A stretch of DNA of 64,000 nt from IMGVR_UViG_3300042261_002385:372266-436265; one strand, 5' to 3'. Counted from the stretch's first letter, positions 1,062-62,302 are shown. The notes: a model not told the origin generated them from the letters alone. Program-made: numbers and translations.

Positions 1062-1400
1062 ATGAAACATGTTAAAACTTTTGAAGGTTTCTTTTCAAGA
1101 TTATTCGGAGGAGACAAAATCGGAGACTGTGACAAAATGACTACTAATAGAGATGGTGATGGTATTGAAGGTATGGGTACTGATTATGTAATATTTGGTG
1201 GTAGAAAATTCGAAGAAGATGATATCGTTTATGCTGATGCAAAAGACCCAAAAAACAACGGATTTGAGAATAAATCAGGTATCTTACCAAGAATTGGTTA
1301 CAGAGAGAAAGATTCAAAAAACGACGGAAAACTTATTATCCCAGGTGGTGATATGTTGAAAAAATGGTTGAAATCTAGAGGACTCGGAAGTAGAATATAA
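1062..1400 (+). CDS. Hypothetical protein with N-terminal MKHVKTFE tag
   Basis: ORF; tag; AATATATA upstream. Confidence 0.75.
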   Translation: MKHVKTFEGFFSRLFGGDKIGDCDKMTTNRDGDGIEGMGTDYVIFGGRKFEEDDIVYADAKDPKNNGFENKSGILPRIGYREKDSKNDGKLIIPGGDMLKKWLKSRGLGSRI

Positions 1401-1405
1401 CTATT

Positions 1406-1435
1406 AAAAACCACTCAATATTGAGTGGTTTTTTT
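1406..1435. terminator. Bidirectional intrinsic terminator
   Basis: aaaaaccactcaat-attgagtggttttt inverted repeat between convergent genes. Confidence 0.85.
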
Positions 1436-2129: not shown

Positions 2130-2144
2130 TTAATATATAGTTTC

Positions 2145-2729
2145 ATGAAACATTTATCAACATTTAAACTATTTGAGAGATTAGATAATTCTACATTAGT
2201 TACAATAGACCAGTTACTTGAAAGAATTAGAATTCCAAATCATATGAGACCACAAATTATTAACTGGTGGAATCAAAATAGAAGTGAAATTAGAATTCAT
2301 TTTTTTAGATTTAATACTACAGAACCAATTGGTGGAATAATTATGGATGAAAATACTATAGTTTTGAACGATGACTTACAAACAAGACCAATGCCTCCTC
2401 ATATTAAATTATTTTTGGCACTTCACGAAAGTAGACACTGCGACCAACACAGAATGGGAAATTCAATAACACAATATTTTGATTCTGTCGTAAGAAACGA
2501 TAGACAATCATTTATGAGACATTATCAAGAATTAGAAAGTGATGCTAATGACTTTGCTATTTCATCTATGAGAGCTTGTGGTTTCGACAGACAAATGAAT
2601 TTTGAAGAAAGAATGCTTAGATCAAATGAAATGGCAGGAGATATGGTTTATCAAATGATGTCAGATGACATACAGAGATTGAATCCGGTTGATTTATTTG
2701 ACTTATTTAAAAAACAAATTGGAGTGTGA
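2145..2729 (+). CDS. HExxH metallopeptidase-like protein with N-terminal tag
   Basis: Start moved to ATG 2145 (MKHLSTFKLFE) behind taatatata; LHESRHCDQH plus downstream ELESDA. Confidence 0.6.
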   Translation: MKHLSTFKLFERLDNSTLVTIDQLLERIRIPNHMRPQIINWWNQNRSEIRIHFFRFNTTEPIGGIIMDENTIVLNDDLQTRPMPPHIKLFLALHESRHCDQHRMGNSITQYFDSVVRNDRQSFMRHYQELESDANDFAISSMRACGFDRQMNFEERMLRSNEMAGDMVYQMMSDDIQRLNPVDLFDLFKKQIGV

Positions 2730-3064
2730 AACATTTAAGAAAAATTTTTGAGTCAGCAGCAGAAGAAAATGAAATCAGAGAAGTTTGTATCTGGCTTCAA
2801 GACTTAGTTGATGATATTGAGATTACAGATAATGTTAGATGTTATGATATTAATATTCGTTGTTTTAGGAAGACTAATACATCTATTGGTGAGTTAGTTA
2901 AAAATTCAGAAAGACTTCAGGAAATAACAAAAGAATATGCTGACCTTTTATTAAGATTGGAGGATTTAGGATATAAAGTTTCTTATCATTTATTAGAAAA
3001 CAAACATCACCTTAACTTTTTTAGTATGACAGGTAAAATACAGATTAATAAAAAAGACCAATAA
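2726..3064 (+). CDS. Hypothetical N-tagged protein (paralogue family)
   Basis: GTG start, MKHLRKIFES. Confidence 0.7.
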   Translation: MKHLRKIFESAAEENEIREVCIWLQDLVDDIEITDNVRCYDINIRCFRKTNTSIGELVKNSERLQEITKEYADLLLRLEDLGYKVSYHLLENKHHLNFFSMTGKIQINKKDQ

Positions 3065-3069
3065 ATTCA

Positions 3070-3432
3070 GTGAAATACTTACAAACATATAAATTATTTG
3101 AATCATCTAATATAGAACAGGTAATAAAAAATATTTTACTTCCTATAAGTGATGGTCATTTTCAGTATGAGGTAAGTGTTGAAGAATATAGTTCTATTCC
3201 TCAGCTAGTCATAAGAGTTGTTTCATGGACCGATGAACCTCTACTGATAACGGATGGGATTAAAGAGGAATTTATGGGTATGAAAAATTATTTAGAATCC
3301 GAAGGTTATAATTATATTTTAGTAAAATACTGGAGACCTAACTCGGTCTCTAGTTCCAAACCATTTGATTATTTTATAAATAATTTTGAAGGAACTATAT
3401 CAAATCTACTATTTGTTGTTAAAAAAATATGA
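3070..3432 (+). CDS. Hypothetical N-tagged protein (paralogue family)
   Basis: MKYLQTYKLFES; IKNILLPISD...YLESEGY core. Confidence 0.72.
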   Translation: MKYLQTYKLFESSNIEQVIKNILLPISDGHFQYEVSVEEYSSIPQLVIRVVSWTDEPLLITDGIKEEFMGMKNYLESEGYNYILVKYWRPNSVSSSKPFDYFINNFEGTISNLLFVVKKI

Positions 3433-4058
3433 AACACTTACAAACATATAAACTATTTGAGTCAATTGAAAGTGAAATCAATTTTGATAAAATCGTTGAA
3501 GTCCTTTCAACTGAATGCTCAGAATTTTTAGATATTTTACAACAATTTAATATTGAAGGTGTTTTCAGAGGTCATAAAATTTGGGATGAAGGAAATATAA
3601 CTAAAGGATTTTGGAAGGTAACACCTTTTGAGAAAAGACTTCCAAGAGATACTAAAGCATCTATAAGTAAATTATTAGATGAAGAATTTGAAAAGAAATT
3701 TGGAATTCCTCTAAGAAGTAAAGGAATATTTGCAAGTAAAGATATATCAATTGCAGCAGATTACGGAAGACATAAAAACGAAGCCTTTTTATTTTTCCCT
3801 AAAAACGGATTTAGATATTTTTGGAATCCGGAAGTAGATGATCTTTTTACTCTTTTAAGAGACGATACCAGTTGGTATGATAAAGAGCCTGTCTTTTGGA
3901 AAACAATGGAATGGTTAGATTTTAAACAGATTGTAGGTGGATACAGAGAAGGTGGAATTCAATATGTAAAGTATCAAGAAATAACTTTTATTTGTGATGA
4001 ATATTATCTACTTGACTTAGATTACTATGACCAATTCTTAAATTACTTTATTAAATAA
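3429..4058 (+). CDS. N-tagged protein, possible ADP-ribosyltransferase fold
   Basis: MKHLQTYKLFES; FRG, IFAS...AADYG, QEI resemble the R-S-E ART pattern. Confidence 0.45.
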   Translation: MKHLQTYKLFESIESEINFDKIVEVLSTECSEFLDILQQFNIEGVFRGHKIWDEGNITKGFWKVTPFEKRLPRDTKASISKLLDEEFEKKFGIPLRSKGIFASKDISIAADYGRHKNEAFLFFPKNGFRYFWNPEVDDLFTLLRDDTSWYDKEPVFWKTMEWLDFKQIVGGYREGGIQYVKYQEITFICDEYYLLDLDYYDQFLNYFIK

Positions 4059-6260: not shown

Positions 6261-6662
6261 ATGAAACACTTAAAATTATTTGAAGATTATAAATATAAGG
6301 GCAACATCCGAGTTAAATTACTCGGAAACAATGATTTGTGGTATGCTAGTAATAATGAATTTGAAATATCAAATATTAAATATACCATTCTCAGTCATAA
6401 TAGTAGCAAACAAGTAATTTATGTTGCTACACTCAATAATGCTGATGATTGTCAAGAAATTCAAATCTCTACGTTGAAGTATCACTACTTTGAGGGTGAT
6501 TTAGTGATGTATTCTGAAGTAGGTTCTCATTTATGGGACAAAGAAATAGAATTATTCAAAAATTTGGGCGGTCAGTTTGGTTATTTAAACTTTTGTAAAT
6601 TAGATAGTGGAACTGAAGTTGGTAAAACAGACCATAGGAAATGGTTTGAAATAGTAGGTTAG
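6261..6662 (+). CDS. Hypothetical N-tagged protein
   Basis: MKHLKLFED; C-terminus EVGKTDHRKWFE resembles that of 8305. Confidence 0.75.
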   Translation: MKHLKLFEDYKYKGNIRVKLLGNNDLWYASNNEFEISNIKYTILSHNSSKQVIYVATLNNADDCQEIQISTLKYHYFEGDLVMYSEVGSHLWDKEIELFKNLGGQFGYLNFCKLDSGTEVGKTDHRKWFEIVG

Positions 6663-6712
6663 ATGTAGAACTGAAGTTAGTAAAACAGAGCATAGGAAAT
6701 GGTTTGAAATAG
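6610..6712 (+). repeat. Two 45-bp direct repeats (2 mismatches, 58-bp period)
   Basis: gaactgaagtt[g/a]gtaaaacaga[c/g]cataggaaatggtttgaaatag at 6610-6654 and 6668-6712. Confidence 0.9.
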
Positions 6713-6739
6713 ATATAATAAGAAAAAAAGATTAGTATC

Positions 6740-6982
6740 ATGAAACACTTAAATAAATTTAATGAAGGTTGGTTTTCTAAAGATGAAGAAAATGAACCAG
6801 TAGATGCGGTAAATAGTAAAATTGAAGATGCTGCTTATAGTTTAGGATCATTTGGTACTATGACTAAGCAAGCCGCTTTTATAAACGGTGCTAAATGGGC
6901 TATTCATAATTTAACAGATGACGAGATTAAATTACTCAGAGAGAATACTGATAAAGACGACCATAGTTTCTTTGGTTTATAA
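6740..6982 (+). CDS. Hypothetical N-tagged protein
   Basis: MKHLNKFNEG. Confidence 0.7.
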   Translation: MKHLNKFNEGWFSKDEENEPVDAVNSKIEDAAYSLGSFGTMTKQAAFINGAKWAIHNLTDDEIKLLRENTDKDDHSFFGL

Positions 6983-7017
6983 TAATTTAATTTAATATAA
7001 TAGAGAAAAATAGGATT

Positions 7018-7690: not shown

Positions 7691-8282
7691 ATGAAATATA
7701 TTAAATTATTTGAAGAATGGAGTCCTAATTTAGAGTATGATGAATCCCAGAAAGAGGAGTTGAAAATAAATTACGAAAAATACGTAATGTCCAGAGATTA
7801 TATTCCTAATATGATTAGAGATTTAATTAAGAAACATTTGTCTGAAAAATGGCATCCAACTCCCACACTAGATATTGTGGAAGTTAAGTGGGAACCAGAA
7901 CCTTTCAAAGATCTTGCGAAACAAAAGGGTATTGTCAGGAAAAAAGAATTTAATGATGTTACTTATGCAGGAAAACTTACTCTAAAATCTGATTTTGCAA
8001 ATACCCCAATTAGTTATAGCACAGGTGGTAACCCAATTTGTTGGTGGTGATTATAGAGCGATGTTAGGAGAGAGATTTGATTTAATCTTAGCCGAAGCGA
8101 CTAAATTACTTGATAATGTGTTGGATTTACCATATAAAGGCGAAATGGATGATAGTAGCCATGGACCAATTTCTTTCAGACAAGTTGATAATACCTATAC
8201 ACTCAAACAAGAATTTGACAGACCACATGAATATAAGGCAATTTTCGGTTTAATACTTGATAAGGTTTATTTAGAAATATAA
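7691..8282 (+). CDS. N-tagged protein, apparently split by a 1-nt frameshift near 8036 (ORFs 7691-8050 and 7995-8282)
   Basis: MKYIKLFEEW; removing one base in ccaattt gives a continuous ...GGNPFVGGDYRAMLGERF... reading. Confidence 0.5.
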
Positions 8283-8304
8283 AAAATAAAAAAAAGATAA
8301 GATT

Positions 8305-8856
8305 ATGAAACACTTAAAATTATTTGAAGACTTCAATGAGTATGATTTTGACGGTGCTAAAAACAATCCTGATAGAATTGTGGTCAAATTTGCGCCAGGT
8401 GGGTATAATAAATTTTGGGATCAATATGTAAAATCAACCGGTGATTATTATAGAGGATTAGGTGAGAATTGGACTTACTTTGGTAGTTGGGAAGACTTAG
8501 AAGAAAAATTTTCTAGTAAGGGATTAAAAATGAGAGATGGTGAATATTATCTTTTATATAAGAACTATGATCCAAAGGATATTAAAGATTGGTACTCTAA
8601 GGGGAAACCTGAAGGTAAATTAGCAGCGACATTCTATTTTCTAAAATATAGCAAAGAAGCTGGAGAAATATACATAGTCTCTGTATATGGAACTGAATAT
8701 CAATATGTAGAAGCGAACAAAGAATATACAACTGATAAACTTGAAGGATATCCACAATCTACTTATTGTCGTTTTGATAAAGGTGATGTAGCTAGATTGG
8801 TTGAGGTAGGTTCTATCGATCATAGAGGTTATTTTGAGGTCGCATCAGTATCATAA
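8305..8856 (+). CDS. Hypothetical N-tagged protein
   Basis: MKHLKLFEDF. Confidence 0.75.
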   Translation: MKHLKLFEDFNEYDFDGAKNNPDRIVVKFAPGGYNKFWDQYVKSTGDYYRGLGENWTYFGSWEDLEEKFSSKGLKMRDGEYYLLYKNYDPKDIKDWYSKGKPEGKLAATFYFLKYSKEAGEIYIVSVYGTEYQYVEANKEYTTDKLEGYPQSTYCRFDKGDVARLVEVGSIDHRGYFEVASVS

Positions 8857-12060: not shown

Positions 12061-12585
12061 GTGAAACACTTAAAAAGATTTAATGAGAATATAACTTCTG
12101 ATAATAGAACTGAAAGATTTCAGTCTATGATGGATCTTGTGAAAGCCTTTGAGAAGGGAAAAATTACACCACCAACTGAAGATGTTCCAATAAGTCATGT
12201 CTATAAAGGTATAGTTATCAAAACGGTAAATAAAATTGATACAACTGGTTTAGGTGGAAGACTCGGATCTCCTGACACCGAGCTTTCTGGAGTTGAAGTC
12301 TATAATGATATTGCTGAAGATTGGTTTAGAAGAACACTAGATGTTGAAAGTAAAAACTATCAAACAAACTGGATTTATATAGGTCAAAATTTTCGCTCTG
12401 GTCAATTTAGTCTCTGTTTCTACGAAAGTGAAAGTGGAGTGAAACAAAGAGTATCGGCTAATTATGGTGTTGATTTTCACGACCATTTAATACTTAACTA
12501 CAATGATGTAAATCATGCTGAATTAGAAAACCTACTAAGTCAATTCGGAGTTGAAGTAGATGAAATGTGGGGAATTCCAAGATAA
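12061..12585 (+). CDS. Hypothetical N-tagged protein
   Basis: GTG start MKHLKRFNEN; taatatata upstream. Confidence 0.72.
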   Translation: MKHLKRFNENITSDNRTERFQSMMDLVKAFEKGKITPPTEDVPISHVYKGIVIKTVNKIDTTGLGGRLGSPDTELSGVEVYNDIAEDWFRRTLDVESKNYQTNWIYIGQNFRSGQFSLCFYESESGVKQRVSANYGVDFHDHLILNYNDVNHAELENLLSQFGVEVDEMWGIPR

Positions 12586-13544: not shown

Positions 13545-14270
13545 ATGAAAAGTGAAACAGAATTTAAGAAATTTGCACTAAGTGAGGGTTTATCATCAAT
13601 GGACCTACACTATCACCAACAACAAATTGAGGCTTCTATGACACCTTATATTCTTGAAGAAAGAGAAATGAGGGTCACACAAATGGATGTATTCAGTAGA
13701 TTACTAAGAGATAGAATTATTTGGATATCAGGAGTTGTAGATCAAAGAATGTGTGATGTCACTCAAGCACAGCTTATGTTTTTAGATTCAACAGAAAAGA
13801 AAGATATCACACTTCATATAAATTCACCAGGTGGTTCCGTTTTACATGGTTTAGGAATTATTGATGTTATGAACTATATCAACTCAGATATCCAAACAAT
13901 CAATACAGGAATGGCAGCATCTATGGGTTCTGTTCTACTTTCATCTGGAACAAAAGGAAAACGATCATCACTTCTACATTCAAGAGTTATGACACACCAA
14001 GTCAGTCACGGAATGCAAGGAAATATTCAAGATACAACTATTTCTCACATTGAAGGACACAAATACAACTATATCTTATTTAAGATTTTGGCTGACAACT
14101 GTGGAAAATCTTTTGAAGAAATGATTGAGTCTTCTCGTCGTGACAAATGGTTTAACTCACATGAAGCACTCCAGTTTGGATTGATTGATGAGGTTATCGG
14201 TGATAACTCTATGGATAAAATGTTAGTTGGATTTGATGACTATTATAACAGAGAAGTTTTATCAAAATAA
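13545..14270 (+). CDS. clpP: ATP-dependent Clp protease proteolytic subunit (Bacteroidota-type)
   Basis: PYILEER..DVFSRLL.DRII, INSPGGSV, GMAASMG (Ser), MTHQ (His), RDKW (Asp). Confidence 0.95.
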   Translation: MKSETEFKKFALSEGLSSMDLHYHQQQIEASMTPYILEEREMRVTQMDVFSRLLRDRIIWISGVVDQRMCDVTQAQLMFLDSTEKKDITLHINSPGGSVLHGLGIIDVMNYINSDIQTINTGMAASMGSVLLSSGTKGKRSSLLHSRVMTHQVSHGMQGNIQDTTISHIEGHKYNYILFKILADNCGKSFEEMIESSRRDKWFNSHEALQFGLIDEVIGDNSMDKMLVGFDDYYNREVLSK

Positions 14271-24771: not shown

Positions 24772-25329
24772 ATGAGGTTATTAAATTTCGAGCTTTTTTG
24801 TGAAGCCTACAACAAACCAAGAGCTGGTGGTAAACGTCGTTGGTCAGTCAAATATAAGAAGAAAATTGATTGTAGTAATCCAAAAGGATTTTCTCAAAAA
24901 CAATATTGTAAAAGAAAACGTAGAGGTGGTCACTATAAAACAGAATCAGTTGATAATGATTTTATAAAAAATACTCTTGGTCATATATTCTTAGAAGTAT
25001 CTGATGTTAGTGATTGGTTTTTTTCGGTAGAAGGCGATATTTTTAGTAACTACTATGAAGTTTATATATCATTTGGTGATTCTGAACCATATCGAGGAGA
25101 TGAAGGTGATGAATATCAACAAAGACAAATTTCTAAAGAATTAATAGATTGTATAAAAAGATCTATAGATTTTATGGACGGTGAAGATTTTTATTATAAT
25201 TTACTTTTTTGTTCAGAATATTCATCCGACCCTGGTGAAGATTATATAGATACAATAGATATTGAAGATTTGAAACCAGGTCAATCAATGTTAGAAAATG
25301 AATCTATCAGAATAAAATTTTCTAAATAG
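24772..25329 (+). CDS. N-tagged protein: basic Cys module + acidic paralogue-family domain
   Basis: MRLLNFELFCE; WSVKYKKKIDCSNPKGFSQKQYC; then IKNTLGHIFLEVSD. Confidence 0.65.
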   Translation: MRLLNFELFCEAYNKPRAGGKRRWSVKYKKKIDCSNPKGFSQKQYCKRKRRGGHYKTESVDNDFIKNTLGHIFLEVSDVSDWFFSVEGDIFSNYYEVYISFGDSEPYRGDEGDEYQQRQISKELIDCIKRSIDFMDGEDFYYNLLFCSEYSSDPGEDYIDTIDIEDLKPGQSMLENESIRIKFSK

Positions 25330-27045: not shown

Positions 27046-27336
27046 ATGAAATTAAAACATTTACAAGACTTTGCGCAAACAAGATTTGGAGGAGCTGAAA
27101 AAATAGCTAACACGGCTAAAGACAAAGGTGGACTAGCACTATTGACCTGGAGACACTTTAAAGTTAAACTTCCTTACTATAAAAAGGCTGCTGAGGGTGA
27201 ACTGGATTTAGAACAAGCAAAAAAAGAGTTTGATAAAACCCTAAAGTCAATTAATCTAAACATGACTCAAACTGAGTTTCAAACTGAAGTAGGTAGACTT
27301 GAAGTCTTAGGTGAGTTACTTATTAAAAACTCTTAG
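27046..27336 (+). CDS. Hypothetical protein, weak N-tag variant
   Basis: MKLKHLQDFAQ; taatatata upstream. Confidence 0.65.
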   Translation: MKLKHLQDFAQTRFGGAEKIANTAKDKGGLALLTWRHFKVKLPYYKKAAEGELDLEQAKKEFDKTLKSINLNMTQTEFQTEVGRLEVLGELLIKNS

Positions 27337-28106
27337 ATAGTTACTCTTTGAGAATTTATTTTCTGACCAATTAATTGTAACGATTCTCTATCAAATTCAT
27401 CACTACTACCGGTTGTAAAATACTTACACGTTCCACCTAAACTTGGTTCTATTCCTAAAGCGGAAATATAATCAACTATAATATCATCCTGAGAAATAAT
27501 CTTAATATCTGGATATAATTCCTTGATGATATCTTTTAAAATGATGTAGTGTGTGCATGCTAATAAAATTGTGTCAATATCATTGTTTAAGTTAAACAAT
27601 TCAGATAAATCCGACTTAATTATCTCTAAACCTTCAGATGTATTGAATTCACCAGTTTCAACCAACTGAGCCCAATTTGGACAACTTAAAGCCGTAACTC
27701 TGTCTAAAGACTTTTGATAAACACCCAAATGTATTGTTTTAGACGTTCCTAACACACCTAAATGATCATACTTGACTCTCTTTACCCAATCAATTGTTGG
27801 TGTGATTATATCAATTGTATTTGATGAATAGGTAGATAACGAACAAGCTGTATTACAAGCTACAATGTTTGTTTTACATCCTGACTGATTCAAAAAATCT
27901 AAACCACGAGTGGTTAGTGATACAATTTCTTGAGAATCAAGTTCTCCATATGGTGCTGTAAGATTGTCACCTAAGAAAACAAAGTCATAGTCTGGAAACT
28001 TTTTACGAAGTGTCGTCAATATAAAAAGACCACCATATCCAGAATCAAAAACACCGATAGGATTATAAGATGAGTTAAACTCAAGATATAATTTTAACCA
28101 CTTCAT
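27333..28106 (-). CDS. murI: Glutamate racemase with N-terminal tag
   Basis: PIGVFDSGYGG, GDN..APYG, ACNTA and LACTHY catalytic Cys; MKWLKLYLEFN leader. Confidence 0.92.
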   Translation of the reverse strand: MKWLKLYLEFNSSYNPIGVFDSGYGGLFILTTLRKKFPDYDFVFLGDNLTAPYGELDSQEIVSLTTRGLDFLNQSGCKTNIVACNTACSLSTYSSNTIDIITPTIDWVKRVKYDHLGVLGTSKTIHLGVYQKSLDRVTALSCPNWAQLVETGEFNTSEGLEIIKSDLSELFNLNNDIDTILLACTHYIILKDIIKELYPDIKIISQDDIIVDYISALGIEPSLGGTCKYFTTGSSDEFDRESLQLIGQKINSQRVTI

Positions 28107-39868: not shown

Positions 39869-40288
39869 ATGAAAAGAATTAAATCATTCATTTTGTTTGA
39901 GACATTTGATGAACAAGATGACGTCTATCAAATTACCACTACTGTAAAAGAAATGTTATTAGAGTTAGACTTCTTAGATATTGAAAAAAGAGTTGATATT
40001 GTTAAAAATCATTCTAAATTACAAATTGATGAATCCCCTGAGATTATTGTAATTAATCTATGGAAGAAGGCAATTAAAAAAGAAGACTATGGATTTAGAG
40101 CTTCTTATCATTGGAATGATGTTAAAGATGTTATAGTGCCAGTTATTGATTATTTAGAAGCGGAAGGATTTACTTGGCAAATGGATAGGGGAACGCTTGC
40201 TTATAATGGAGTTCCTATTATATCTACATCAGGTAGTCAGCAATTCGATACTGTTAGGAGTAAAGTAGAAATGTGGTTTATAAGATGA
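39869..40288 (+). CDS. N-tagged paralogue-family protein (close to 51347)
   Basis: MKRIKSFILFET; start moved from 39854. Confidence 0.72.
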   Translation: MKRIKSFILFETFDEQDDVYQITTTVKEMLLELDFLDIEKRVDIVKNHSKLQIDESPEIIVINLWKKAIKKEDYGFRASYHWNDVKDVIVPVIDYLEAEGFTWQMDRGTLAYNGVPIISTSGSQQFDTVRSKVEMWFIR

Positions 40289-40704
40289 GAAAGATTAAGT
40301 CATTTAAGTTATTTGAAAGTGATTATCTACCACTAAATTTTGATTATACACAGTATGATGAAGACCATAAATTCATTTCAGATACACTTTTAGATTTAGA
40401 AGACATAGGATATAAAATCAAAATCTCACCAGATGGAATTTCTAGTCATATAGGAATTAATGAAGAAATGCCATTCTTTATAATTGATAATAAAAAATAC
40501 TTTAAATTTTCTGATGTTAAAGAACAACTTCTTCAAATTAAATCTTACTTAGATGATAGATGGTTTAAGTGTGGTGTTCTTTTTGAAGGTGATCCTAAAA
40601 GACTAGAAGTTTATATAGATGAAAAAGATTATGACTATTTAGATGATTGGTTTCAAACATCAACTACAGCAATCGTAAATTTAGCAGTCTATTTTAATAT
40701 ATAG
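40285..40704 (+). CDS. N-tagged paralogue-family protein
   Basis: MRKIKSFKLFES; start moved from 40273. Confidence 0.72.
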   Translation: MRKIKSFKLFESDYLPLNFDYTQYDEDHKFISDTLLDLEDIGYKIKISPDGISSHIGINEEMPFFIIDNKKYFKFSDVKEQLLQIKSYLDDRWFKCGVLFEGDPKRLEVYIDEKDYDYLDDWFQTSTTAIVNLAVYFNI

Positions 40705-40707
40705 TTA

Positions 40708-41187
40708 GTGAAACATTTAAAATCATATAAAGTATTTGAAAATTCGGGTTCTGGAAATGCCCAATTTGATTGGTTGAGAAAACAAAATAATGAAAGATTT
40801 TTTAAGTTAGCAGATATACTTTATTCTGAAGTTTTTGATGAGTATGATGTTATCGAAAAAAAAGATGAAAGTTTTGATGGCCAAGCCGATCCTACTCACA
40901 AATTCTGGGGATTCAATTTATTAAACGGAGGTTTTGTAAAAAATAAAAGTGAAATCTCAGACACTGATTCTATTAAATCAATTTTCGTTTACAATATACC
41001 AGAACACGAAGAAAGTGAATTTTATGAATTGTTAAAAAGTTTAGATGAAAGAGTTTTTGATTATTGTGAAAAACATTTAGTCGTTACTCAAGAATCATAT
41101 GTCAATGATTATGTTTACTTTGACTTTATAATATCTTTCGGAGATGAAACTGCTTTTTATAACGAGTTAGGCGCACCACTTACTTGA
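40708..41187 (+). CDS. Hypothetical N-tagged protein
   Basis: MKHLKSYKVFEN. Confidence 0.72.
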   Translation: MKHLKSYKVFENSGSGNAQFDWLRKQNNERFFKLADILYSEVFDEYDVIEKKDESFDGQADPTHKFWGFNLLNGGFVKNKSEISDTDSIKSIFVYNIPEHEESEFYELLKSLDERVFDYCEKHLVVTQESYVNDYVYFDFIISFGDETAFYNELGAPLT

Positions 41188-41202: not shown

Positions 41203-41679
41203 ATGAAAAGAATAAAGACATTTAAACTATTTGAATCAGTATCCGAACAAATTATAAGAGACATACTCTTAGATCTAACTGATGATAGTAATTTCAATGT
41301 TAATATCAAAAAGGTAGATTATCATTTAGAAGTTGTTATAACGAGGGGTTCTTATTTAGATTCAAGAAAAACAAGAGAGATTCCAGGAGCACCTGAAGCA
41401 CCAGGTGGATATCCAAATAATTTATTTTTATGGTTTGAAATCAAAGATGTTATTATAAGATTATGTGAGTATGTTTATTCAGAAACTGAATTAAAACCAA
41501 TTGAGAATAGACATTTTCAACAATGGTATTTACAGGCAGAACATTTTTCAAAATCACCATTTAGAATGAAAAATCTTGGTATTGGAAGTGAGTTTGGTAT
41601 AGGATGGCACAAAGCAGAAGATTTTACTTTAGGTGATTTTATTTCTTTTACTGGATTAAAATTAATAATTAAATTGTGA
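41203..41679 (+). CDS. N-tagged paralogue-family protein
   Basis: MKRIKTFKLFES; IRDILLDLTDD. Confidence 0.72.
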   Translation: MKRIKTFKLFESVSEQIIRDILLDLTDDSNFNVNIKKVDYHLEVVITRGSYLDSRKTREIPGAPEAPGGYPNNLFLWFEIKDVIIRLCEYVYSETELKPIENRHFQQWYLQAEHFSKSPFRMKNLGIGSEFGIGWHKAEDFTLGDFISFTGLKLIIKL

Positions 41680-41948
41680 GAAGAATAAAGACATACAAAT
41701 TATTTGAATCTGTTCAAAACTGGATAGAGATTAATGATAAACTTTGTAGAGATTTCGAGTTTTCTGATTTCAATGAAGCTTTACAATTCATTAATAAAAT
41801 ATCAGATATTTGTGAATCAGAAAATCATCATCCCGAAATCAATTGGACTTATAATAAGATAACTCTAAAGTTATCAACACACGATGCAGGAGATATTATC
41901 ACTGATAAAGATTTCAGATTAGCTAAATTAATAGATGATTTAGTATAG
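41676..41948 (+). CDS. phhB: Pterin-4-alpha-carbinolamine dehydratase with N-terminal tag
   Basis: F.F.DF..A..F.N......E..NHHP......LSTHDAG..T.KD. Confidence 0.88.
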   Translation: MRRIKTYKLFESVQNWIEINDKLCRDFEFSDFNEALQFINKISDICESENHHPEINWTYNKITLKLSTHDAGDIITDKDFRLAKLIDDLV

Positions 41949-43248: not shown

Positions 43249-43485
43249 ATGAAACATATTAAAAATTATAGATTGTTTGAATCAGCTGGTCCAGAAGAAG
43301 CTTGGAGAGAATTATTCAAAAATTGGGATGGTAAAAGTCCGAATGCTCCATGGCACTATCAATATGATGAGTTCAAAAAAGAGCTTCAAGCAGAAGGTAA
43401 ATGGAAACCTGAATGGGATAAGAGTTTTAACTCTTCACGAGACCAAGCACAAGAAGATTATCTTACACATTTTAACAGACATTAA
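43249..43485 (+). CDS. Hypothetical N-tagged protein
   Basis: MKHIKNYRLFES; terminator 43491-43519. Confidence 0.7.
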   Translation: MKHIKNYRLFESAGPEEAWRELFKNWDGKSPNAPWHYQYDEFKKELQAEGKWKPEWDKSFNSSRDQAQEDYLTHFNRH

Positions 43486-51346: not shown

Positions 51347-51736
51347 GTGAAAAAGATTAAATCATTTAGTTTATTTGAGTCAGTTGATGATGCATTAGAC
51401 ATTTTACCTGTTGTAAAGGATATGTTATTAGAGTTAAGTGATTTAGATTATATTACTAATTGTGTAGTAAGAAGAATGGATGGTTGTGAGTATATTAGAA
51501 TAGGAATTTCTAAGCCAGTTGTGATTGGAGATAGATATGATGTTAAGGCATCATTCGAGTGGATTGATATAAAAGATATTATGGATACTATTATAGAGTA
51601 TTTAAAATCCGAAGGGTATCATTATCAAGTGGATAAGGGAACCCTATCTTGGAGTGGTCATCCTATTGTGGTCACTTCTGGAAATGCCTTTGAAGGTATT
51701 AAATCAAGATGTGAAATGTGGTTTGAAAAGAGATGA
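51347..51736 (+). CDS. N-tagged paralogue-family protein (close to 39869)
   Basis: MKKIKSFSLFES; shared D.GTL...G.PI..TSG...EMWF C-terminus. Confidence 0.75.
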   Translation: MKKIKSFSLFESVDDALDILPVVKDMLLELSDLDYITNCVVRRMDGCEYIRIGISKPVVIGDRYDVKASFEWIDIKDIMDTIIEYLKSEGYHYQVDKGTLSWSGHPIVVTSGNAFEGIKSRCEMWFEKR

Positions 51737-52248
51737 AGAGGTTAAAATCATTTAAGTTATTTAATGAATCAAAAGATTATAATTTATCTACTATAAAGGA
51801 TATGTTATTAGATTTTACTGATAAGGATATTGATGTTGATGTCAGTGAAGGTTCTTGGATTTTAGATAATGGGGAAGTTGAATATGTTAAGATAAAGATT
51901 GGAAAATTTAATGGACCTCTTTTTAGTATAGAAAGGTGTTTATTAGATGTTATAGATTATTTAGAAGAATCTGGGTTTGTTATGATGGATGAGTCTTGGT
52001 ATTGGAATGATTCTTGGCAGCATTACGTTGGGTGTCCTAATTGTTTATCAGATGATTTTGAGGACAATTATGGTTTACGTGGAGCAACTCGTTGTAATAA
52101 GTGTGAGTATATCGGGCCTCCTGATAGTTTTTTACAAGACCAGTGGTCAGTTACAAGATATGATTTGGCAAAGGATATTAAGGGTAGGCAGGTTGAACAA
52201 ATAGAGTTACTTTTCAGTGATAGAAGGAGTAAGTTCGGTGGTGGGTAA
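51733..52248 (+). CDS. N-tagged paralogue-family protein with Zn-ribbon insert
   Basis: MKRLKSFKLFNES; CPNC...CNKC. Confidence 0.7.
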   Translation: MKRLKSFKLFNESKDYNLSTIKDMLLDFTDKDIDVDVSEGSWILDNGEVEYVKIKIGKFNGPLFSIERCLLDVIDYLEESGFVMMDESWYWNDSWQHYVGCPNCLSDDFEDNYGLRGATRCNKCEYIGPPDSFLQDQWSVTRYDLAKDIKGRQVEQIELLFSDRRSKFGGG

Positions 52249-56928: not shown

Positions 56929-57507
56929 TCAAAAAGGTGAAAGTTTATGACGTGAGGGGTTTAAATTTTTACCACTTCCTGCTACAGCGGACAAGCATTT
57001 CCAACATATCGCAGCTGCGAAAGTAATAATAGCTCCGGCTAAAACACCAATACCTAATCCAGTTCCTAATAAAGCAAGTAAAGTAACGATGGCTCCTCCA
57101 ATAGTGATTGCTGCTGAACTTAACCAACCTATCATTTTCAAGAATTCAACTGCACTCATACCTAAAATTTCTTCAGTAATTAACGTATAGTTTTCTTTTA
57201 ATACCGGTTGTAATTTTTTCTCGTCAGTTGGTGGAACATAATTTTTTAATTTTTCATAACAATCTTTTATGTCTTCTATACCAACTTTTTCGGATACTAT
57301 TTTACAAGCAGCATTGAATTTATCGGCATATTTCTCCATTACCTCTTTAGCCTTCTCCATACCTTCGCGGTAAGATCCTGTTAGTTTATCCCAGAGGTTT
57401 TTAAGACTATTTTTTAGTGAGTCCCACCACTCACCCAATCTGCTAAATAATCCTTCTTCTTCATTAATGGAATAAGAAAAACTTTCGAATGATTTGACGT
57501 ATTTCAT
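56929..57507 (-). CDS. N-tagged protein with C-terminal hydrophobic hairpin
   Basis: MKYVKSFESF; two Gly/Ala-rich TM-like helices near C-terminus. Confidence 0.7.
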   Translation of the reverse strand: MKYVKSFESFSYSINEEEGLFSRLGEWWDSLKNSLKNLWDKLTGSYREGMEKAKEVMEKYADKFNAACKIVSEKVGIEDIKDCYEKLKNYVPPTDEKKLQPVLKENYTLITEEILGMSAVEFLKMIGWLSSAAITIGGAIVTLLALLGTGLGIGVLAGAIITFAAAICWKCLSAVAGSGKNLNPSRHKLSPF

Positions 57508-58582: not shown

Positions 58583-58991
58583 ACTTTTTATATATTTTGC
58601 TCATTTTTTGTTGTTAAATTTTGTTTCTAAATTTTAACATAATCATATAAAACCGTTGATAATAAAGGGTTTCATAAAAAATAGCTATTTTTGAATTATA
58701 TATACAAAATGATTAGAAGGATTATATCGTGGTATAAAATCTGGATATTAAAAAGAGAAATAAAGTCAATTCAAGTAGAAATTGATGAGTATTATCTTAC
58801 GCTATTAGCCCGTAATGATGAATTTCATAAGGTCATAGACATAGACAAACACTTTCAGAGAGTTGTTAAACTAAGAGACGTTGAAAGACGTGAGTTAGAA
58901 AGACAGATTGAATCTCTTAAAAGGTAGTTAAAACTTCTCTTTTTAATTAAGTAATCAATTTCACTTAAATTGTTTACCCTAAATTTGTGCC

Positions 58992-60641
58992 TTAAATTTT
59001 AGTTACGAGATTTTCTACAATTTGGAGACCTCTTATTATTTTTGAATAATAATCATTTACTCTCCAATTTCTCAAATATTGACAAGCTCTTTCACCAGTA
59101 TCTTGACCTAAATAATCTATGAAATTTGATAAATTATCTAAACCGTAAGTGCTATTAGAAAAGAAGTTTGATAGACTTATCATTTTTTGACGAGCTATTT
59201 CTAAATCTTCTATGGTATTAAATTCACCAGACATTAGTCTTGTATAGAACTTTTGACTTATTCTTTCTAAACTTTCAACAATTGGTAAATATTTGTTTTC
59301 AGTTTCTTCACTGTCGGATTTTAGAATTTTTTTAACAGTTTCTAAATTTTTAGTGATTCTAGTAGTTCTTTCAGCTGCTCTTTTGTAAAGGTCTTTGATT
59401 CTATTATTAATTTGATTAATGCAGTATTCTTTATTACTTTCGTCTTCAGTAGACATCATATCATAATAAAGTTCTGATATTGATCCAAAATAGTTTTGAT
59501 ATCTTGAAGCTGATTCTAAGACAAACATTGACCATCTACCACCAACTCCTCTAGATACTAAATTTTTGATATTAGACACATCGCCTATGATGTCAGCTTT
59601 AAGTGCAATTTGAGTAAGATATCTTTCAATATTTTGTTTTCTAACATCATCATCACTAACTACTAATCTGCTGCCAGATTTAAGTTCTTCTCTTTCATCT
59701 TTTATTTCACTTCTACGTTGATACTCACCCGACTTTAATTTATTTAAGTCTAACACTAAGGCAAAATGAGCATCTTTTATAGTAGATTCTACATTTGTTC
59801 CAGTATATGATTTAAAGTATTGGTTTAGTCCAACATTCCACTCGTAAGGATCTACGGCATCTTTATCATCATCATCATCACCTTCTTCTTTTTCTTTAAG
59901 AACACAAATTCTGTTAAAATCTCCACCAGATACATTCCAAGAGTATCTTCCATAACTTCTCCAAGCACTACCATTTGGTGATCCACCGTCGAACCTGTCT
60001 TGAATACAGAATACTTCTCCACCACTTTGAAAAATCGTTGCAATTACATCTGGATCTCTATCATGTGCTGCAATTGTAACTTTTGTCAAGTGTGGTAGAC
60101 TACGGAGAGTTCTTACTCCATTTGAATCAGGTAACAGGGTAGATACTACTTTATATTTTTGCAAAGATTTTGATTTAGATGCTACGCTTCTAAGAACTCC
60201 ATCAACTCCAGTTTGTGTGATGAATTTACCATCTGATGAAAACCAGAATTTAATTATTTTTACCTCTGGTTGTTGTGGTTCTTTTCCAGATCCATCACAA
60301 TGGGGACAATCAACGATTCTAGTTCTTTGACCCCACATACGTGCTAATTTACCTGATTTACAAACCTCACCTTCAACACCGTGTTGTCTGAATGCGGTTT
60401 TAGAAGTCATTTTACAAGGTTCATCTTTAGGTTCAAATTTAACATTTAGTGCCTTTTTGAAAGGTAAGTATTCAAACATATCATCTGAAAACTGAGATAG
60501 TGGAAAATCGTAACTGCGAGCTAATTTTTCGAGTGTATTAATGAATCTTTGTTTAGATTCAGAATTTATATATCCTAAAATTTTAGTTAATTTAACTGAT
60601 TCAAATGCTTCGAAAAGTTTGAGATATTTTAATTGTCTCAT
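58992..60641 (-). CDS. Large N-tagged hypothetical protein
   Basis: MRQLKYLKLFEAFE; CPHCDGSG Zn motif; helical C-half. Confidence 0.75.
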   Translation of the reverse strand: MRQLKYLKLFEAFESVKLTKILGYINSESKQRFINTLEKLARSYDFPLSQFSDDMFEYLPFKKALNVKFEPKDEPCKMTSKTAFRQHGVEGEVCKSGKLARMWGQRTRIVDCPHCDGSGKEPQQPEVKIIKFWFSSDGKFITQTGVDGVLRSVASKSKSLQKYKVVSTLLPDSNGVRTLRSLPHLTKVTIAAHDRDPDVIATIFQSGGEVFCIQDRFDGGSPNGSAWRSYGRYSWNVSGGDFNRICVLKEKEEGDDDDDKDAVDPYEWNVGLNQYFKSYTGTNVESTIKDAHFALVLDLNKLKSGEYQRRSEIKDEREELKSGSRLVVSDDDVRKQNIERYLTQIALKADIIGDVSNIKNLVSRGVGGRWSMFVLESASRYQNYFGSISELYYDMMSTEDESNKEYCINQINNRIKDLYKRAAERTTRITKNLETVKKILKSDSEETENKYLPIVESLERISQKFYTRLMSGEFNTIEDLEIARQKMISLSNFFSNSTYGLDNLSNFIDYLGQDTGERACQYLRNWRVNDYYSKIIRGLQIVENLVTKI

Positions 60642-62302
60642 ATTTGTGGACCTACGATTTCTACTTTTATTCCGCTTCTTCTTAGTTCGGATACATATTC
60701 TTTAGTTTGCTTGTCAACTATAAGGTCACCAGAAATTACTAATTTTTTTACTTTTAAGTTACTGAAACCTTCTTTCATATCAGCTAATGTATCTAATGTA
60801 TAAAGTATTTGTAATTCTTCCAATTCAGTGAATATAGAAAGATCAATATCTCCTGTCATATCACAACTTAATATCTGAAGTTTCTTAATATTTGGATTTA
60901 CTGAAACAATTTCTTCGAATATCTTAGAGTCAAATTTACATTTATCAAATGCGATAGAGTCTGTTTTTACGTTGCTAAATCCTGACAATGTTTTTATTTT
61001 CAATGATTTGAATTTAATCCATTCTAAGTCAAGTGGAATTTGAGTCAAATTCTCTGGAATATCTGTAGTCTCAATTACTAGTTGTTTGATTTTTGCTTTT
61101 GGTGATATTTTTATCTTACTCCAGTCATAAACTGCACTTAAGTAAAGTGATTTAGTATTTTTTCCAATAAACTGAGCTTGGTCAAGTCTCATTCTATCCA
61201 TATAAGGAGCTCTAATTGAATCTTCAGGATCAATATCCGGTGTGAATAAATATCTAGAAGAACTTGGGCTTGTGTTTTCAACGTTGCTTGAATATTTTGT
61301 TACAAGCTCGTCAAATATATCTTTCATCCTATCTGGATAAGCTCTGTCAAAGTAAATCTTTGCTTCACTTTGGTCATCAAATGATTCGATATTTCTAATC
61401 ATCATTCTTGAAAGTGGTAGTTTATCTGATATTTTTTCATCATTCCAGAAAATCGGAGTATCAAATACAAAGAAAGCTGGAATTGAATTCGGATCGAAAA
61501 CGTTTCCTAATAGTTGTTCTCTGTAGCCACCTGTGTATAAATGTTGACAAGAACTATAGAATTTTGAAATAGACATGTTCAAAATATCACTCGGATTGTG
61601 GTCAATCTGAAGATATATATCTCTTCCAAAGATTGCATATTCATATCTGTAGTCACTGTTGTGATTTTCTTTAGCTAAATTTCTTAATTGACTAATATCT
61701 CTTGATGAGAAAATAGTTGTAGAGACTCTATCATCTGGATAACATCTATTGTAGTCATCAACAAAGCTATTGATATTAATTAAGTTCGTTGAGAAAACAG
61801 GATCACCTGCATTCTTTTTAACACGAATCATATTTCCTTCTTCATCTCTAATTGGTCTACCATTCTCATCTTTTTGAATTCTTTCTGAAGCTTGAGTTTC
61901 TCTAATTTCTAATTTTCTAAATACCGGCTCATAGATAAAAACTATTTGATCTACAGTTGGTGCTTGGATATTAAAATTATCCATAACCATTTTACTAGCA
62001 TCGGTTAGAAGCTCTAAATTTATAGACTCTTGAAGAACATGATTGAATTTATCTGGAATACTTGTAAATGAATTCATAATATTTTCCATATTACAATCAA
62101 AAAAATAAGATAAAACTTTAAGTTTATCTTCTTCTTCAAGTTTCCATCTACCTTGTTTAATCTTATCGGTCGGATCTACTTCTTCATAATCTAAGTATTT
62201 CTCACCCCATTGTTGAGCAACAGCTTTTGCTTGTTTTGGTAAGATAATATCTTTGATTCTGGCTTCGTTTAACCATTGTTCTCTAGTTTTAATCCACTTC
62301 AT
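60638..62302 (-). CDS. Large N-tagged protein with LRR-like C-terminus
   Basis: MKWIKTREQWLNE; MS....SSCQ motif; L..L.I repeats at C-terminus. Confidence 0.7.
   Translation of the reverse strand: MKWIKTREQWLNEARIKDIILPKQAKAVAQQWGEKYLDYEEVDPTDKIKQGRWKLEEEDKLKVLSYFFDCNMENIMNSFTSIPDKFNHVLQESINLELLTDASKMVMDNFNIQAPTVDQIVFIYEPVFRKLEIRETQASERIQKDENGRPIRDEEGNMIRVKKNAGDPVFSTNLININSFVDDYNRCYPDDRVSTTIFSSRDISQLRNLAKENHNSDYRYEYAIFGRDIYLQIDHNPSDILNMSISKFYSSCQHLYTGGYREQLLGNVFDPNSIPAFFVFDTPIFWNDEKISDKLPLSRMMIRNIESFDDQSEAKIYFDRAYPDRMKDIFDELVTKYSSNVENTSPSSSRYLFTPDIDPEDSIRAPYMDRMRLDQAQFIGKNTKSLYLSAVYDWSKIKISPKAKIKQLVIETTDIPENLTQIPLDLEWIKFKSLKIKTLSGFSNVKTDSIAFDKCKFDSKIFEEIVSVNPNIKKLQILSCDMTGDIDLSIFTELEELQILYTLDTLADMKEGFSNLKVKKLVISGDLIVDKQTKEYVSELRRSGIKVEIVGPQI

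Follow-up and report, generated by a model that had tools for sequence, protein, structure and literature searches.

About one in six proteins of a freshwater huge phage, and about one in nine in a 642-kb relative, start with the same 8–13-residue leader (MK[HY][LI]K.FE...), a virus-specific tag on otherwise unrelated, putatively late-expressed proteins. Our preferred reading, held at about even confidence, is that the leader loads these proteins into a T4-type capsid, although packaging itself is unproven. The analysis started from a stretch of 64,000 nucleotides (IMGVR_UViG_3300042261_002385:372266-436265, hereafter the window), for which an earlier note had listed about 27 proteins with an N-terminal tag resembling the T4 capsid-targeting sequence (CTS) and had inferred a cargo-loading system, much larger than that of T4, that packages dozens of proteins, including enzymes, for injection with the DNA.

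The leader in the window

The observation made in the earlier note is confirmed and lies far beyond chance. All 27 coordinates mark real ORFs, although for the six minus-strand ORFs the note had given the low (stop) coordinate rather than the start of the tag (Table 1). Nineteen ORFs match a strict N-terminal regular expression, four are moderate and four are weak and may not belong. The tag has three flavours: MK[HY][LI]K[LT]FE[ED][FYW], MK[HR][LI]K[ST][FY]K[LV]FE[SN] and MKHL[KN][KR]FNE. With the same gene caller and expression, we found 0 of 236 genes in T4, 1 weak match in 305 genes in the equally AT-rich Tenacibaculum phage PTm1 and none in the reversed window. Codon usage at the conserved positions matches the background usage for those amino acids, and substitutions are conservative at the protein level (L/I, F/Y, H/Y); the conservation is therefore at the peptide level, not the nucleotide level.

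The leader is modular. After removal of 14 residues, only two pairs among the 27 window proteins were similar by BLASTP, and the tag precedes a Pterin_4a domain, an NFACT-R domain and a racemase-like domain. In the AF2 model of the 554-aa core protein, residues 1–14 are unstructured (pLDDT < 50). Alignments of homologues show an indel hot spot right after the Glu, and there are orthologues without the tag.

Table 1. Tagged ORFs and other features of the window. Motif refers to the promoter-like motif.
Coordinates	Strand	Feature	Length (aa)	N-terminus	Observations
1062..1400	+	tagged ORF	112	MKHVKTFEGF	short flavour; motif 29 nt upstream
2130..2139	+	example of the T[TA]AATATATA promoter-like motif			21 copies in the window, nearly all 14-34 nt upstream of an ORF start; the same motif lies upstream of portal, scaffold-protease and capsid genes of relatives
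2145..2729	+	tagged ORF	194	MKHLSTFKLFER	weak DUF6782 metallopeptidase-like hit; motif at 2130, 14 nt upstream; heads the array 2145-4058
2726..3064	+	moderately tagged ORF	112	VKHLRKIFES	GTG start overlapping the upstream stop
3070..3432	+	tagged ORF	120	VKYLQTYKLFES	member of the tag + spacer + 'ILL..D' sub-family
3429..4058	+	tagged ORF	209	MKHLQTYKLFES	phrog_11975 (function unknown)
6261..6662	+	tagged ORF	133	MKHLKLFEDY	first gene of the array 6261-8856; motif at 6228
6740..6982	+	tagged ORF	80	MKHLNKFNEG	FNE flavour; 70% identical over 60 aa to a tagged protein of LR756502.1
7018..7623	+	tagged ORF	201	MKYLKLFEEF	
7691..8050	+	tagged ORF	119	MKYIKLFEEW	
8305..8856	+	tagged ORF	183	MKHLKLFEDF	homologues keep the tag, with an indel hot spot directly after the Glu
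12061..12585	+	tagged ORF	174	VKHLKRFNEN	FNE flavour; motif at 12047, 14 nt upstream
13545..14270		ClpP			PF00574, E = 4e-54
24772..25329	+	weak candidate	185	MRLLNFELFCEA	motif at 24758
27046..27336	+	weak candidate	96	MKLKHLQDFAQ	
27333..28106	-	moderately tagged ORF	257	MKWLKLYLEF	followed by an Asp/Glu-racemase-like domain (PF01177, E = 3.6e-6, below the curated cut-off); tag starts at 28106
28103..28438	-	weak candidate	111	MKVKRYKDYIKEG	tag starts at 28438
31687..32052	-	weak candidate	121	MIHLESFGQF	tag starts at 32052
39869..40288	+	tagged ORF	139	MKRIKSFILFET	paralogue of 51347
40285..40704	+	tagged ORF	139	MRKIKSFKLFES	
40708..41187	+	tagged ORF	159	VKHLKSYKVFEN	motif at 40694
41203..41679	+	tagged ORF	158	MKRIKTFKLFES	
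41676..41948	+	tagged ORF	90	VRRIKTYKLFES	fused directly to a pterin-4a-carbinolamine dehydratase domain, residues 11-89 (PF01329, E = 5.8e-26)
43249..43485	+	tagged ORF	78	MKHIKNYRLFES	motif at 43215
51347..51736	+	tagged ORF	129	VKKIKSFSLFES	motif at 51330
51733..52248	+	tagged ORF	171	MKRLKSFKLFNES	
56929..57507	-	tagged ORF	192	MKYVKSFESFSYSINEEE	tag followed by an I-N-E site; tag starts at 57507; motif at 57535; weak phiKZ_IP hit, E = 0.009
58992..60641	-	moderately tagged ORF	549	MRQLKYLKLFEAFES	tag starts at 60641; homologue in LR756502.1 has a degenerate tag
60638..62302	-	clade-wide core protein, moderately tagged	554	MKWIK.R..[FW]LNE|A (conserved leader)	novel N-terminal domain plus C-terminal LRR domain; tag starts at 62302; motif at 62316

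Distribution among viruses and cellular genomes

The earlier note did not recognize that the tag is a trait of a whole clade of huge phages rather than of this genome alone. An exact DNA pattern for MKHLKxFE gave at least 120 loci in IMG/VR, whereas the same codons in permuted order gave none, and nearly all of the matches sit at true ORF starts, with a stop 0–10 codons upstream and no upstream ATG. In 596 Gb of prokaryotic genomes there were 11 hits, two of which lie on one contig that shares genes with the clade and looks like a misbinned phage. Of 120 tag loci, 103 share genes with the 642-kb Mahaphage LR756502.1, in which 107 of about 965 genes carry the tag and the short form occurs 68 times at residue 2, against 8 times at any internal position in 201,942 residues. 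The window shares 23 of its 128 genes with this phage. The tag is kept across contigs whose shared proteins have diverged to a median of about 42% identity and whose GC ranges from 0.20 to 0.47.

Head genes, promoter motif and Glu sites

The earlier note had named the prohead protease and scaffold as genes to look for. They are not in the window, nor are the other head genes, but the clade relatives LR756502.1 and L057 (our label for a second relative) contain T4-type head genes: a gp20 portal (Portal_T4, 3e-55), a gp23 capsid protein (Gp23, 4e-28) and a gp21-like protease (Peptidase_S77, a weak hit at 2.9e-4) fused to a scaffold with about 12 "YSEYIAE" repeats. Tagged genes sit inside the head-gene cluster, just upstream of the portal gene and just after the capsid gene.

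Tagged genes share the AATATATA promoter motif of the structural genes. In LR756502.1, the motif lies within 45 nt upstream of 11 of 14 structural genes, 54 of 107 tagged genes (82% within 1 kb), 1 of 14 replication genes and 158 of 830 other genes, with a chance expectation of 0.014. In the window, it precedes 12 of 27 tagged genes against 16 of 101 others (p = 0.003), and the untagged motif-bearing genes include the endolysin. Across 80 clade loci, the motif was found for the MCP in 51 of 75, scaffold in 63 of 74, portal in 56 of 65 and tagged genes in 48 of 68 cases. We take this as evidence, indirect only, for late expression together with head proteins; there are no transcript data.

T4-type prohead proteases cut at [LI]-x-E sites, and such sites are also seen in the scaffold repeats of this clade (about 12 I-A-E repeats) and in the capsid propeptide, which has a conserved [IM]-[NH]-E|N. 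Among 170 distinct tags, 151 fall into the three flavours, and 115 of these have a hydrophobic P3 before the conserved Glu. Strict [LI]-x-E with P1 at residues 8–20 occurs in 47% of tagged against 21% of untagged proteins, and some tags read ...FESFIAE or ...F[LIV]NE|A. However, about a quarter of the tags lack a hydrophobic P3 (for example K-T-F-E), making uniform cleavage at the tag Glu doubtful, and on these figures we do not take a position on whether the leader ends in a prohead-protease site.

Comparison with known leaders

T4 internal proteins share only a CTS of roughly 10 aa at the N-terminus, which binds the core and is cut off by gp21 after Glu, and foreign proteins fused to it are packaged (PMC8442874, PMC5694885, PMC12373910, PMC3012670). 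The leader described here is likewise a short element at the extreme N-terminus, the only one shared by otherwise unrelated, fast-evolving accessory proteins in phages with a gp20/gp21/gp23-type head; a Glu, mostly with an upstream hydrophobic residue, follows it, and its genes carry the promoter motif of the clade's structural genes. Direct sequence similarity to the T4 CTS (MKTYQEFIAE / MKTFKEF) is weak. With a tag matrix, the T4 IP leaders rank only 53, 105 and 106 of 2162 T4 start sites, which is not significant, and the resemblance is limited to the loose pattern M-K-x-hydrophobic-K/Q-x-F (M1, K2, a hydrophobic residue at 4 and F7); a minority of tags end in FIAE or F[LIV]NE, and we neither affirm nor reject a sequence relationship. 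The consensus is different and longer, and it is used on 20–27 proteins in 64 kb and about 107 per 642-kb genome, against 3 in T4 and at least 10 described among its relatives. The cargo includes proteins with enzyme domains and does not fit the pattern of small basic DNA-associated proteins: tagged proteins have a median pI of about 5.0 (6.0–6.6 for the rest) and 63–66% have pI < 5.5, whereas T4 internal proteins are highly basic (PMC8442874).

The phiKZ-like giant phages (phiKZ, 201phi2-1, SPN3US) also load many proteins into the head, their T4-related prohead protease cuts after Glu, and diverged paralogues can keep identical N-terminal propeptides, such as SPN3US gp53/gp54 (PMC5694885). 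Those sites are S/A/G-x-E or A-x-E, the propeptides are long and family-specific rather than one universal 10-aa leader, no such universal leader was found for that group in the papers examined, and the only hit to the phiKZ_IP family was insignificant. In encapsulins, a short terminal peptide directs unrelated enzymes into an HK97-fold protein shell; those peptides are usually C-terminal, have a different consensus, belong to cellular nanocompartments, involve no protease step and usually serve only one or a few cargo types. These encapsulin features were not tested here.

The leader does not have the features of Sec, Tat or lipoprotein signal peptides (a hydrophobic core of 10 or more residues, a twin-arginine motif or a lipobox), being amphipathic and charged (K, K, E) with no hydrophobic stretch, while true signal peptides occur on other ORFs of the window. 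Nor does it fit the double-glycine bacteriocin leaders exported by ABC transporters: there is no GG at a fixed position, and the ABC transporter of the window has no homologue in the tag-rich LR756502.1.

Interpretation

The interpretation in the earlier note is partly supported. We propose, about as likely as not, that the leader M-K-[HYW]-[LI]-K-x-[FY]-(K-[LI]-F)-E is a virion-targeting peptide of the Mahaphage clade of huge Bacteroidota phages, functionally analogous to the T4 CTS but used on a much larger scale. In this view, tagged proteins would be made late, from the same AATATATA-type promoters as the head and tail genes; the short amphipathic, basic-then-acidic leader would dock them onto the prohead core, a candidate receptor being the acidic, roughly 12-fold repeated 'YSEYIAE.LDK.I' part of the protease-scaffold fusion; the gp21-type protease, which cuts after Glu with a hydrophobic P3, would then remove the leader while degrading the scaffold; and the mature proteins would stay in the head and enter the next cell with the DNA. 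Our data establish that the tag is real, strictly N-terminal, under peptide-level selection, modular on unrelated proteins, restricted to viruses and this clade (with the few cellular hits given above) and linked to the structural-gene promoter motif, in a clade with T4-type head genes and Glu-type sites. Docking to the scaffold, cleavage, presence in virions and injection are only inferred, and no virion, cleavage or injection data exist for any tagged protein. Besides the weak similarity to the T4 CTS, the acidic cargo and the imperfect Glu context, several points argue against this reading: some cargo (pterin dehydratase, a racemase-like protein, an NFACT-R domain) has no obvious use as an injected protein, more than 100 cargo species per genome is unprecedented, the related jumbo phage PTm1 has the same kind of head genes but no tag, and the head genes are not in the window itself.

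Other explanations appear less likely. The leader might be recognized by a phage-encoded partner other than the prohead core, either as an N-terminal degron or adaptor signal for the phage ClpP, acting with a ClpX-type unfoldase to time the turnover of a large set of late proteins, or as a handle for a phage chaperone or an intracellular assembly site. Given that the tag is virus-specific and clade-wide, the partner should be phage-encoded, and the bona fide ClpP of the window is conserved in LR756502.1 and in two tag loci and is absent from tag-less PTm1; the leader is exposed and unstructured, and some ClpX substrates are recognized through N-terminal Met-basic-hydrophobic motifs, a point not tested here. 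However, there is no clear reason to degrade proteins co-expressed with structural genes, ClpP is common in large phages, so that co-occurrence in 3–5 genomes says little, the conserved aromatic-Glu and the [LIV]-x-E context match the head protease better than a Clp degron, and tagged genes lie inside the head-gene cluster. We consider this unlikely, and somewhat more so the possibility that the tag is only the conserved first helix, or an inherited 5′ end, of a vast and rapidly diverging paralogous gene pool, kept without a sorting function because new accessory genes arise by duplication or by recombination into a ready-made promoter-start-leader cassette. Tagged genes do lie in tandem arrays, often with one promoter per array, a real paralogous sub-family exists (tag + spacer + '[IV]xD[IM]LL[ED][LF]xD'), a few pairs are detectably homologous, and mobile promoter cassettes that shuffle genes are known in T4-type phages (PMC2839356). 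Against this, synonymous sites vary at background rates while the residues are held, which argues against a recombination or nucleotide cassette, the tag persists across the diverged contigs described above, it is attached to unrelated Pfam domains and to the 554-aa core protein, it is unstructured in the AF2 model, and half of the tagged genes have no promoter of their own.

It is more doubtful still that the leader anchors proteins to the outside of the virion, as a decoration or adhesin display. Late expression, the LRR domain of the core tagged protein and the acidic cargo, which would be easier to place outside than next to DNA, are compatible with this, and language-model look-alikes of 7018-7623 include lectin- or adhesion-type clusters such as DUF1566/Lcl_C, although this is a lead only. 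Yet enzymes such as a pterin dehydratase or a racemase-like protein make little sense on a capsid surface, the protease-type Glu site after the tag points to the interior, where the protease acts, and our searches found no homology to Hoc- or Soc-type decoration proteins. Least likely is an mRNA-level translation-initiation signal, with the peptide as a by-product, serving nearly leaderless late transcripts in a host without Shine-Dalgarno pairing. The promoter motif often starts only 13–15 nt before the ATG, so many tagged transcripts would have almost no leader, and the tag codons are A/T-rich; but codon choice at tag positions equals the background, at least 60 untagged genes have the same 13–14-nt spacing, half of the tags are on internal genes of operons, and host genomes do not use the motif.

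A further-reaching possibility, which we rate somewhat less likely than not, is that the largest known phages use one universal N-terminal address code to pre-load more than 100 different late-made proteins per genome into the capsid, with the repeated 14-residue scaffold module as the multivalent receptor for the code. This cargo would be an arsenal of small acidic inhibitors, LRR proteins and enzymes delivered with the DNA, so that host take-over would start from injected protein rather than from early transcription.

Genomic context

The window has a GC content of 30.5%, is densely packed with small ORFs on both strands and has no tRNA genes. The recognizable genes encode a PG_binding + GH19 endolysin, a GIY-YIG endonuclease, ClpP, an ABC exporter, a sigma-70 factor, a type-IX-secretion CHU_C/SprB protein, two Laminin_G_3 proteins and HU. 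The window has no close match among GenBank phages, a megablast search of 25 kb having returned nothing, and one of its proteins is recorded on a contig of 522,324 bp. Near-identical DNA was found in about 20 public freshwater, lake, lagoon and estuary metagenome runs from about 14 studies; the phage is widespread. Of 128 called genes, 23 have homologues, up to 60-70% identical, in LR756502.1, a 642-kb "Mahaphage" of Al-Shayeb et al. 2020 belonging to a clade predicted to infect Bacteroidetes (PMC7162821). The window is therefore a piece of a huge phage of that clade.

A PHROG hit labelled "head maturation protease" proved to be a genuine ClpP, not the prohead protease, encoded in an apparent operon with a small signal-peptide protein and an MsbA-like ABC exporter; ClpP is conserved in LR756502.1, whereas the exporter is not. 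The phage also encodes an 816-aa protein with a signal peptide, SprB and PKD-like repeats and a CHU_C type-IX-secretion sorting domain, which points to a Bacteroidota host and to phage proteins being placed on the host surface.

Coordinates of the features discussed, in the window and in related genomes and loci
Sequence	Position	Strand	Feature
Window	13545-14270	+	ClpP protease, first gene of the apparent operon 13545-16472
Window	14292-14660	+	Small signal-peptide protein
Window	14667-16472	+	MsbA-like ABC exporter
Window	42312-43172	-	Full-length sigma-70 family factor (regions 1.2, 2, 3, 4)
Window	53545-55995	-	816-aa CHU_C/SprB protein
Window	28106, 28438, 32052, 57507, 60641, 62302	-	Tag starts of the six minus-strand ORFs
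Window	8305-8856		Tagged ORF; family with indel hot spot after the tag Glu
Window	41676-41948		Tag directly in front of a Pterin_4a domain (E = 5.8e-26, domain from residue 11)
Window	58992-60641	-	Protein of about 550 aa, adjacent to the following
Window	60638-62302	-	554-aa clade-wide core protein
Window	3070, 39869, 40285, 41203, 51347, 51733		Tagged sub-family with the second motif
LR756502.1	10-45 kb		Many genes of the same sub-family
Window	2130, 6228, 12047, 16920, 24758, 27032, 40694, 51330, 63010 and others		T[TA]AATATATA motif
Window	29568, 31098, 57535, 62316	-	T[TA]AATATATA motif
L057	5458-7566		Prohead protease-scaffold fusion
LR756502.1	225272-227371		Prohead protease-scaffold fusion
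L233	17647-19941		Prohead protease-scaffold fusion
L234	17487-19910		Prohead protease-scaffold fusion
L057	2995-4872	-	625-aa ORF between the portal and protease genes

A modular N-terminal leader

An earlier note, made from the sequence alone, had claimed that about 27 proteins of the window carry an N-terminal tag resembling the T4 capsid-targeting sequence (CTS), and the observation of the tag holds: every position that it listed marks an ORF whose product starts with the motif or a variant of it, although for the six minus-strand ORFs the stop end had been given instead of the tag start. Nineteen ORFs fit a strict N-terminal expression, four are moderate and four are weak. Three flavours are distinguished: MK[HY][LI]K[LT]FE[ED][FYW], MK[HR][LI]K[ST][FY]K[LV]FE[SN] and MKHL[KN][KR]FNE. 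Chance is excluded, as the same procedure finds 0 of 236 genes in T4, 1 of 305 in the equally AT-rich jumbo phage PTm1 and none in reversed sequences, and in LR756502.1 the short form occurs 68 times at residue 2 and only 8 times at any other position in 201,942 residues. The codons for the conserved Lys, His/Tyr, Leu/Ile, Phe/Tyr and Glu are used in about the same proportions as elsewhere in the same genes, and the substitutions seen are conservative for a protein; selection therefore acts on the peptide.

After removal of the first 14 residues, only two pairs of the 27 window proteins remain similar by BLASTP. There is one real paralogous sub-family, large within the tagged set, in which the tag is followed by a spacer of 5-25 residues and then by a second conserved motif, [IV]xD[IM]LL[ED][LF]xD; it has six members in the window and many more in LR756502.1, and [LI]xD at residues 30-42 occurs in 40% of tagged against 17% of untagged proteins. 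Otherwise, the tag precedes different things, including a Pterin_4a domain, a racemase-like domain (tag at 28106) and, in relatives, an NFACT-R domain and a flavin oxidoreductase. Pfam, PHROGs and NCBIfam searches with about 40 tagged proteins were almost all empty, a tblastn search of cultured phages with the tagged 57507 protein gave nothing useful, and PDB sequence searches with the 367-aa and 495-aa late proteins found nothing.

The 554-aa core protein and its neighbour of about 550 aa are conserved as a pair in LR756502.1. The former has at least 1002 homologues at 60-70% identity, and all 120 listed homologues start with MKWIK.R..[FW]LNE-A or a close variant. In its AlphaFold model (pLDDT 80.5), residues 1-14 are the least confident part and are followed by a novel domain and a C-terminal leucine-rich-repeat (LRR) domain, of which a Foldseek search recognized only the LRR part. 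In the family of 8305-8856, the alignment has an indel hot spot immediately after the tag Glu; one homologue lacks the tag, and another (P0129) carries a different leader (MKRIIRLTESDLTRIVRRVIKES, …RLTESDL…), which may be a second kind of leader used by other phages but is absent from the window and from LR756502.1. A portal-adjacent family also has tagged and untagged orthologues. The tag behaves as a detachable leader.

Distribution of the tag

An exact DNA pattern for MKHLKxFE matched at least 120 loci in IMG/VR, in contigs of 5-675 kb with 20-47% GC from many samples, and almost all hits lie at true ORF starts, whereas the same codons in another order gave 0 hits. In 596 Gb of bacterial and archaeal genomes the pattern was found in only 11 places, two of which lie on one contig that shares genes with the clade and looks like a misbinned phage. 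The flanks of the first 131 loci examined (120 from IMG/VR and 11 from cellular genomes) contain 346 tagged ORFs among 3088 ORFs of at least 50 aa, often in tandem arrays, and 103 of the 120 IMG/VR loci share other genes with LR756502.1. A 36-nt BLAST search with the tag gave mostly noise, but it pointed to the LR7565xx huge phages. In LR756502.1 itself, 107 of about 965 genes are tagged, concentrated in the first 100 kb (52 of 200 genes) and in a few other clusters. We also tested for genome-specific tag dialects; the effect is real but tiny (identity 0.381 against 0.363).

The tag is a virus-only trait of a large clade, with 431 IMG/VR contigs carrying the capsid gene of this clade. More distant relatives with the same type of head genes lack it, such as Tenacibaculum phage PTm1, which was examined as a cultured, annotated relative and in which a single gene of 305 matched.

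Head genes of the clade and proposed cleavage context

Locus L057, a clade relative whose capsid protein is 75% identical to that of LR756502.1, encodes, as does LR756502.1, a T4-type portal (Portal_T4, 3e-55), a gp23-type capsid protein (4e-28, also similar to gp23 of T4-like cyanophages) and a 700-aa protein whose N-terminus resembles the T4 gp21 prohead protease, although this match is weak (Peptidase_S77, 2.9e-4). The middle of the 700-aa protein carries about twelve tandem 14-residue repeats, I.YSEYIAE.LDK., each containing an I-A-E protease-type site. The repeats are also present in the 636-kb and 735-kb relatives, whereas the fusion protein of PTm1 lacks them; co-occurrence of the tag with the scaffold repeat was not tested, the related loci compared being only the 80 closest capsid loci. 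The earlier note had named, as a check, a search for the prohead protease and scaffold and for the same motif on them: none of the structural or replication genes that we could identify in LR756502.1 is tagged. In several clade members, a 625-aa ORF and a small ORF family are inserted on the opposite strand between the portal and protease-scaffold genes; by eye the 625-aa ORF looks like an RNase II/R-type protein, which was not tested. The capsid protein has a conserved [IM]-[NH]-E|N about 40 residues from its start, in PTm1 as well. These features fit a T4-like protease that cuts after Glu with Leu/Ile two residues before it, the rule known for T4 and, with other P3 residues, for phiKZ-like phages (PMC5694885).

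The invariant Glu of the tag is preceded two residues earlier by a hydrophobic residue in 115 of 151 classified tags, which holds for almost all of the long and FNE flavours and for half of the short flavour. About a quarter of the tags (e.g. K-T-F-E) do not fit. A strict [LI]-x-E ending at residues 8-20 is found in 47% of tagged against 21% of untagged proteins of LR756502.1, with no excess further into the proteins. Some tags continue with ...FESFIAE or ...F[LIV]NE-A, which are textbook sites.

A probable late promoter motif

The motif T[TA]AATATATA (core AATATATA) occurs 21 times in the window. Nearly all copies lie 14-34 nt upstream of an ORF start, often only 4-5 nt before the ATG/GTG, which implies nearly leaderless transcripts. 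In the window, the motif precedes 12 of 27 tagged or candidate genes against 16 of 101 others (p = 0.003); the untagged genes with the motif include the endolysin and the Laminin_G_3 proteins, the 554-aa core protein also lies under it, and tagged genes without the motif follow a motif-bearing gene in the same array. In relatives, it precedes structural genes but, with one exception among the 14 scored, not replication genes.

Genes with the motif close upstream, by gene class
Gene class	LR756502.1, within 45 nt	80 clade loci, within 60 nt
Structural	11/14	capsid 51/75, scaffold-protease 63/74, portal 56/65
Tagged	54/107 (82% within 1 kb on the same strand)	48/68
Replication	1/14	not scored
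Other	158/830	not scored
Chance	0.014	not computed

With the ATATATA core alone, the counts in the 80 clade loci are 68/75 for the capsid and 74/74 for the scaffold-protease genes. We infer that this is the late promoter of the clade, comparable to the TATAAATA of T4, and that tagged genes are late genes; this rests on sequence association only. No RNA run containing the genome was found, and there are no transcript data. The phage encodes its own full-length sigma-70 family factor, whose relation to the motif is unknown.

Interpretation

These proteins are unrelated and fast-evolving, are inferred to be made late, share only a short exposed N-terminal leader ending in a protease-type Glu and belong to a phage with T4-type head assembly, which is the profile of the T4 internal proteins. 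The roughly 10-residue CTS of the latter binds the scaffold core and is removed by gp21, and it can carry foreign proteins into the head (PMC8442874, PMC5694885, PMC12373910, PMC3012670). We therefore favour a capsid-targeting leader, with the acidic repeated scaffold module as a speculative receptor for the basic-hydrophobic leader. The earlier note had read the tag as a cargo-loading system, much larger than that of T4, that packages dozens of proteins, including enzymes, for injection with the DNA, and this interpretation is partly supported. The tag itself, its conservation as a peptide and its restriction to the clade are established by the sequence comparisons, whereas late expression and targeting to the capsid are inferred, and no data show the proteins in particles. 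The resemblance to the T4 CTS is weak: with a matrix built from 150 tags, the T4 IP leaders rank 53rd, 105th and 106th of 2162 possible T4 starts, and T4 has no positive-scoring gene. The cargo is acidic (median pI about 5), unlike the basic T4 internal proteins; this acidity would suit DNA-mimic-type inhibitors. Several cargo domains are ordinary enzymes. By our own rough arithmetic, given that T4 carries about 1000 internal-protein molecules with 170 kb of DNA, a 640-kb head could at the same ratio hold some tens of copies of each of about 100 proteins, a number that is unusual but not impossible.

Other explanations cannot be ruled out. The leader may be a signal for another phage-encoded partner, for example the conserved phage ClpP, or an inherited 5' module of a hyper-diverse gene pool, or it may anchor proteins for external decoration, for which a language-model atlas gave only weak lectin-like leads. 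An mRNA-level start signal is disfavoured by the search of cellular genomes, the codon usage and the promoter-motif counts.

Full-text searches for the motif, for Mahaphage papers and for N-terminal leaders of packaged phage proteins found no description of this tag. A CTS-like leader is in itself known from T4; what is new here is a different consensus, in another clade, at 10-30 times the scale, and the most far-reaching reading still admissible is a general cargo-address code of the largest phages. Even if its function is different, the tag is unusual in being a virus-only, clade-wide N-terminal signal on 11-19% of a proteome. If the leader is a packaging code, it would explain what a large share of the unknown genes of huge phages are for, give a sequence rule to list injected proteins, which are likely anti-defence and take-over factors, in hundreds of uncultivated genomes, and provide a portable tag for loading foreign proteins into very large capsids.
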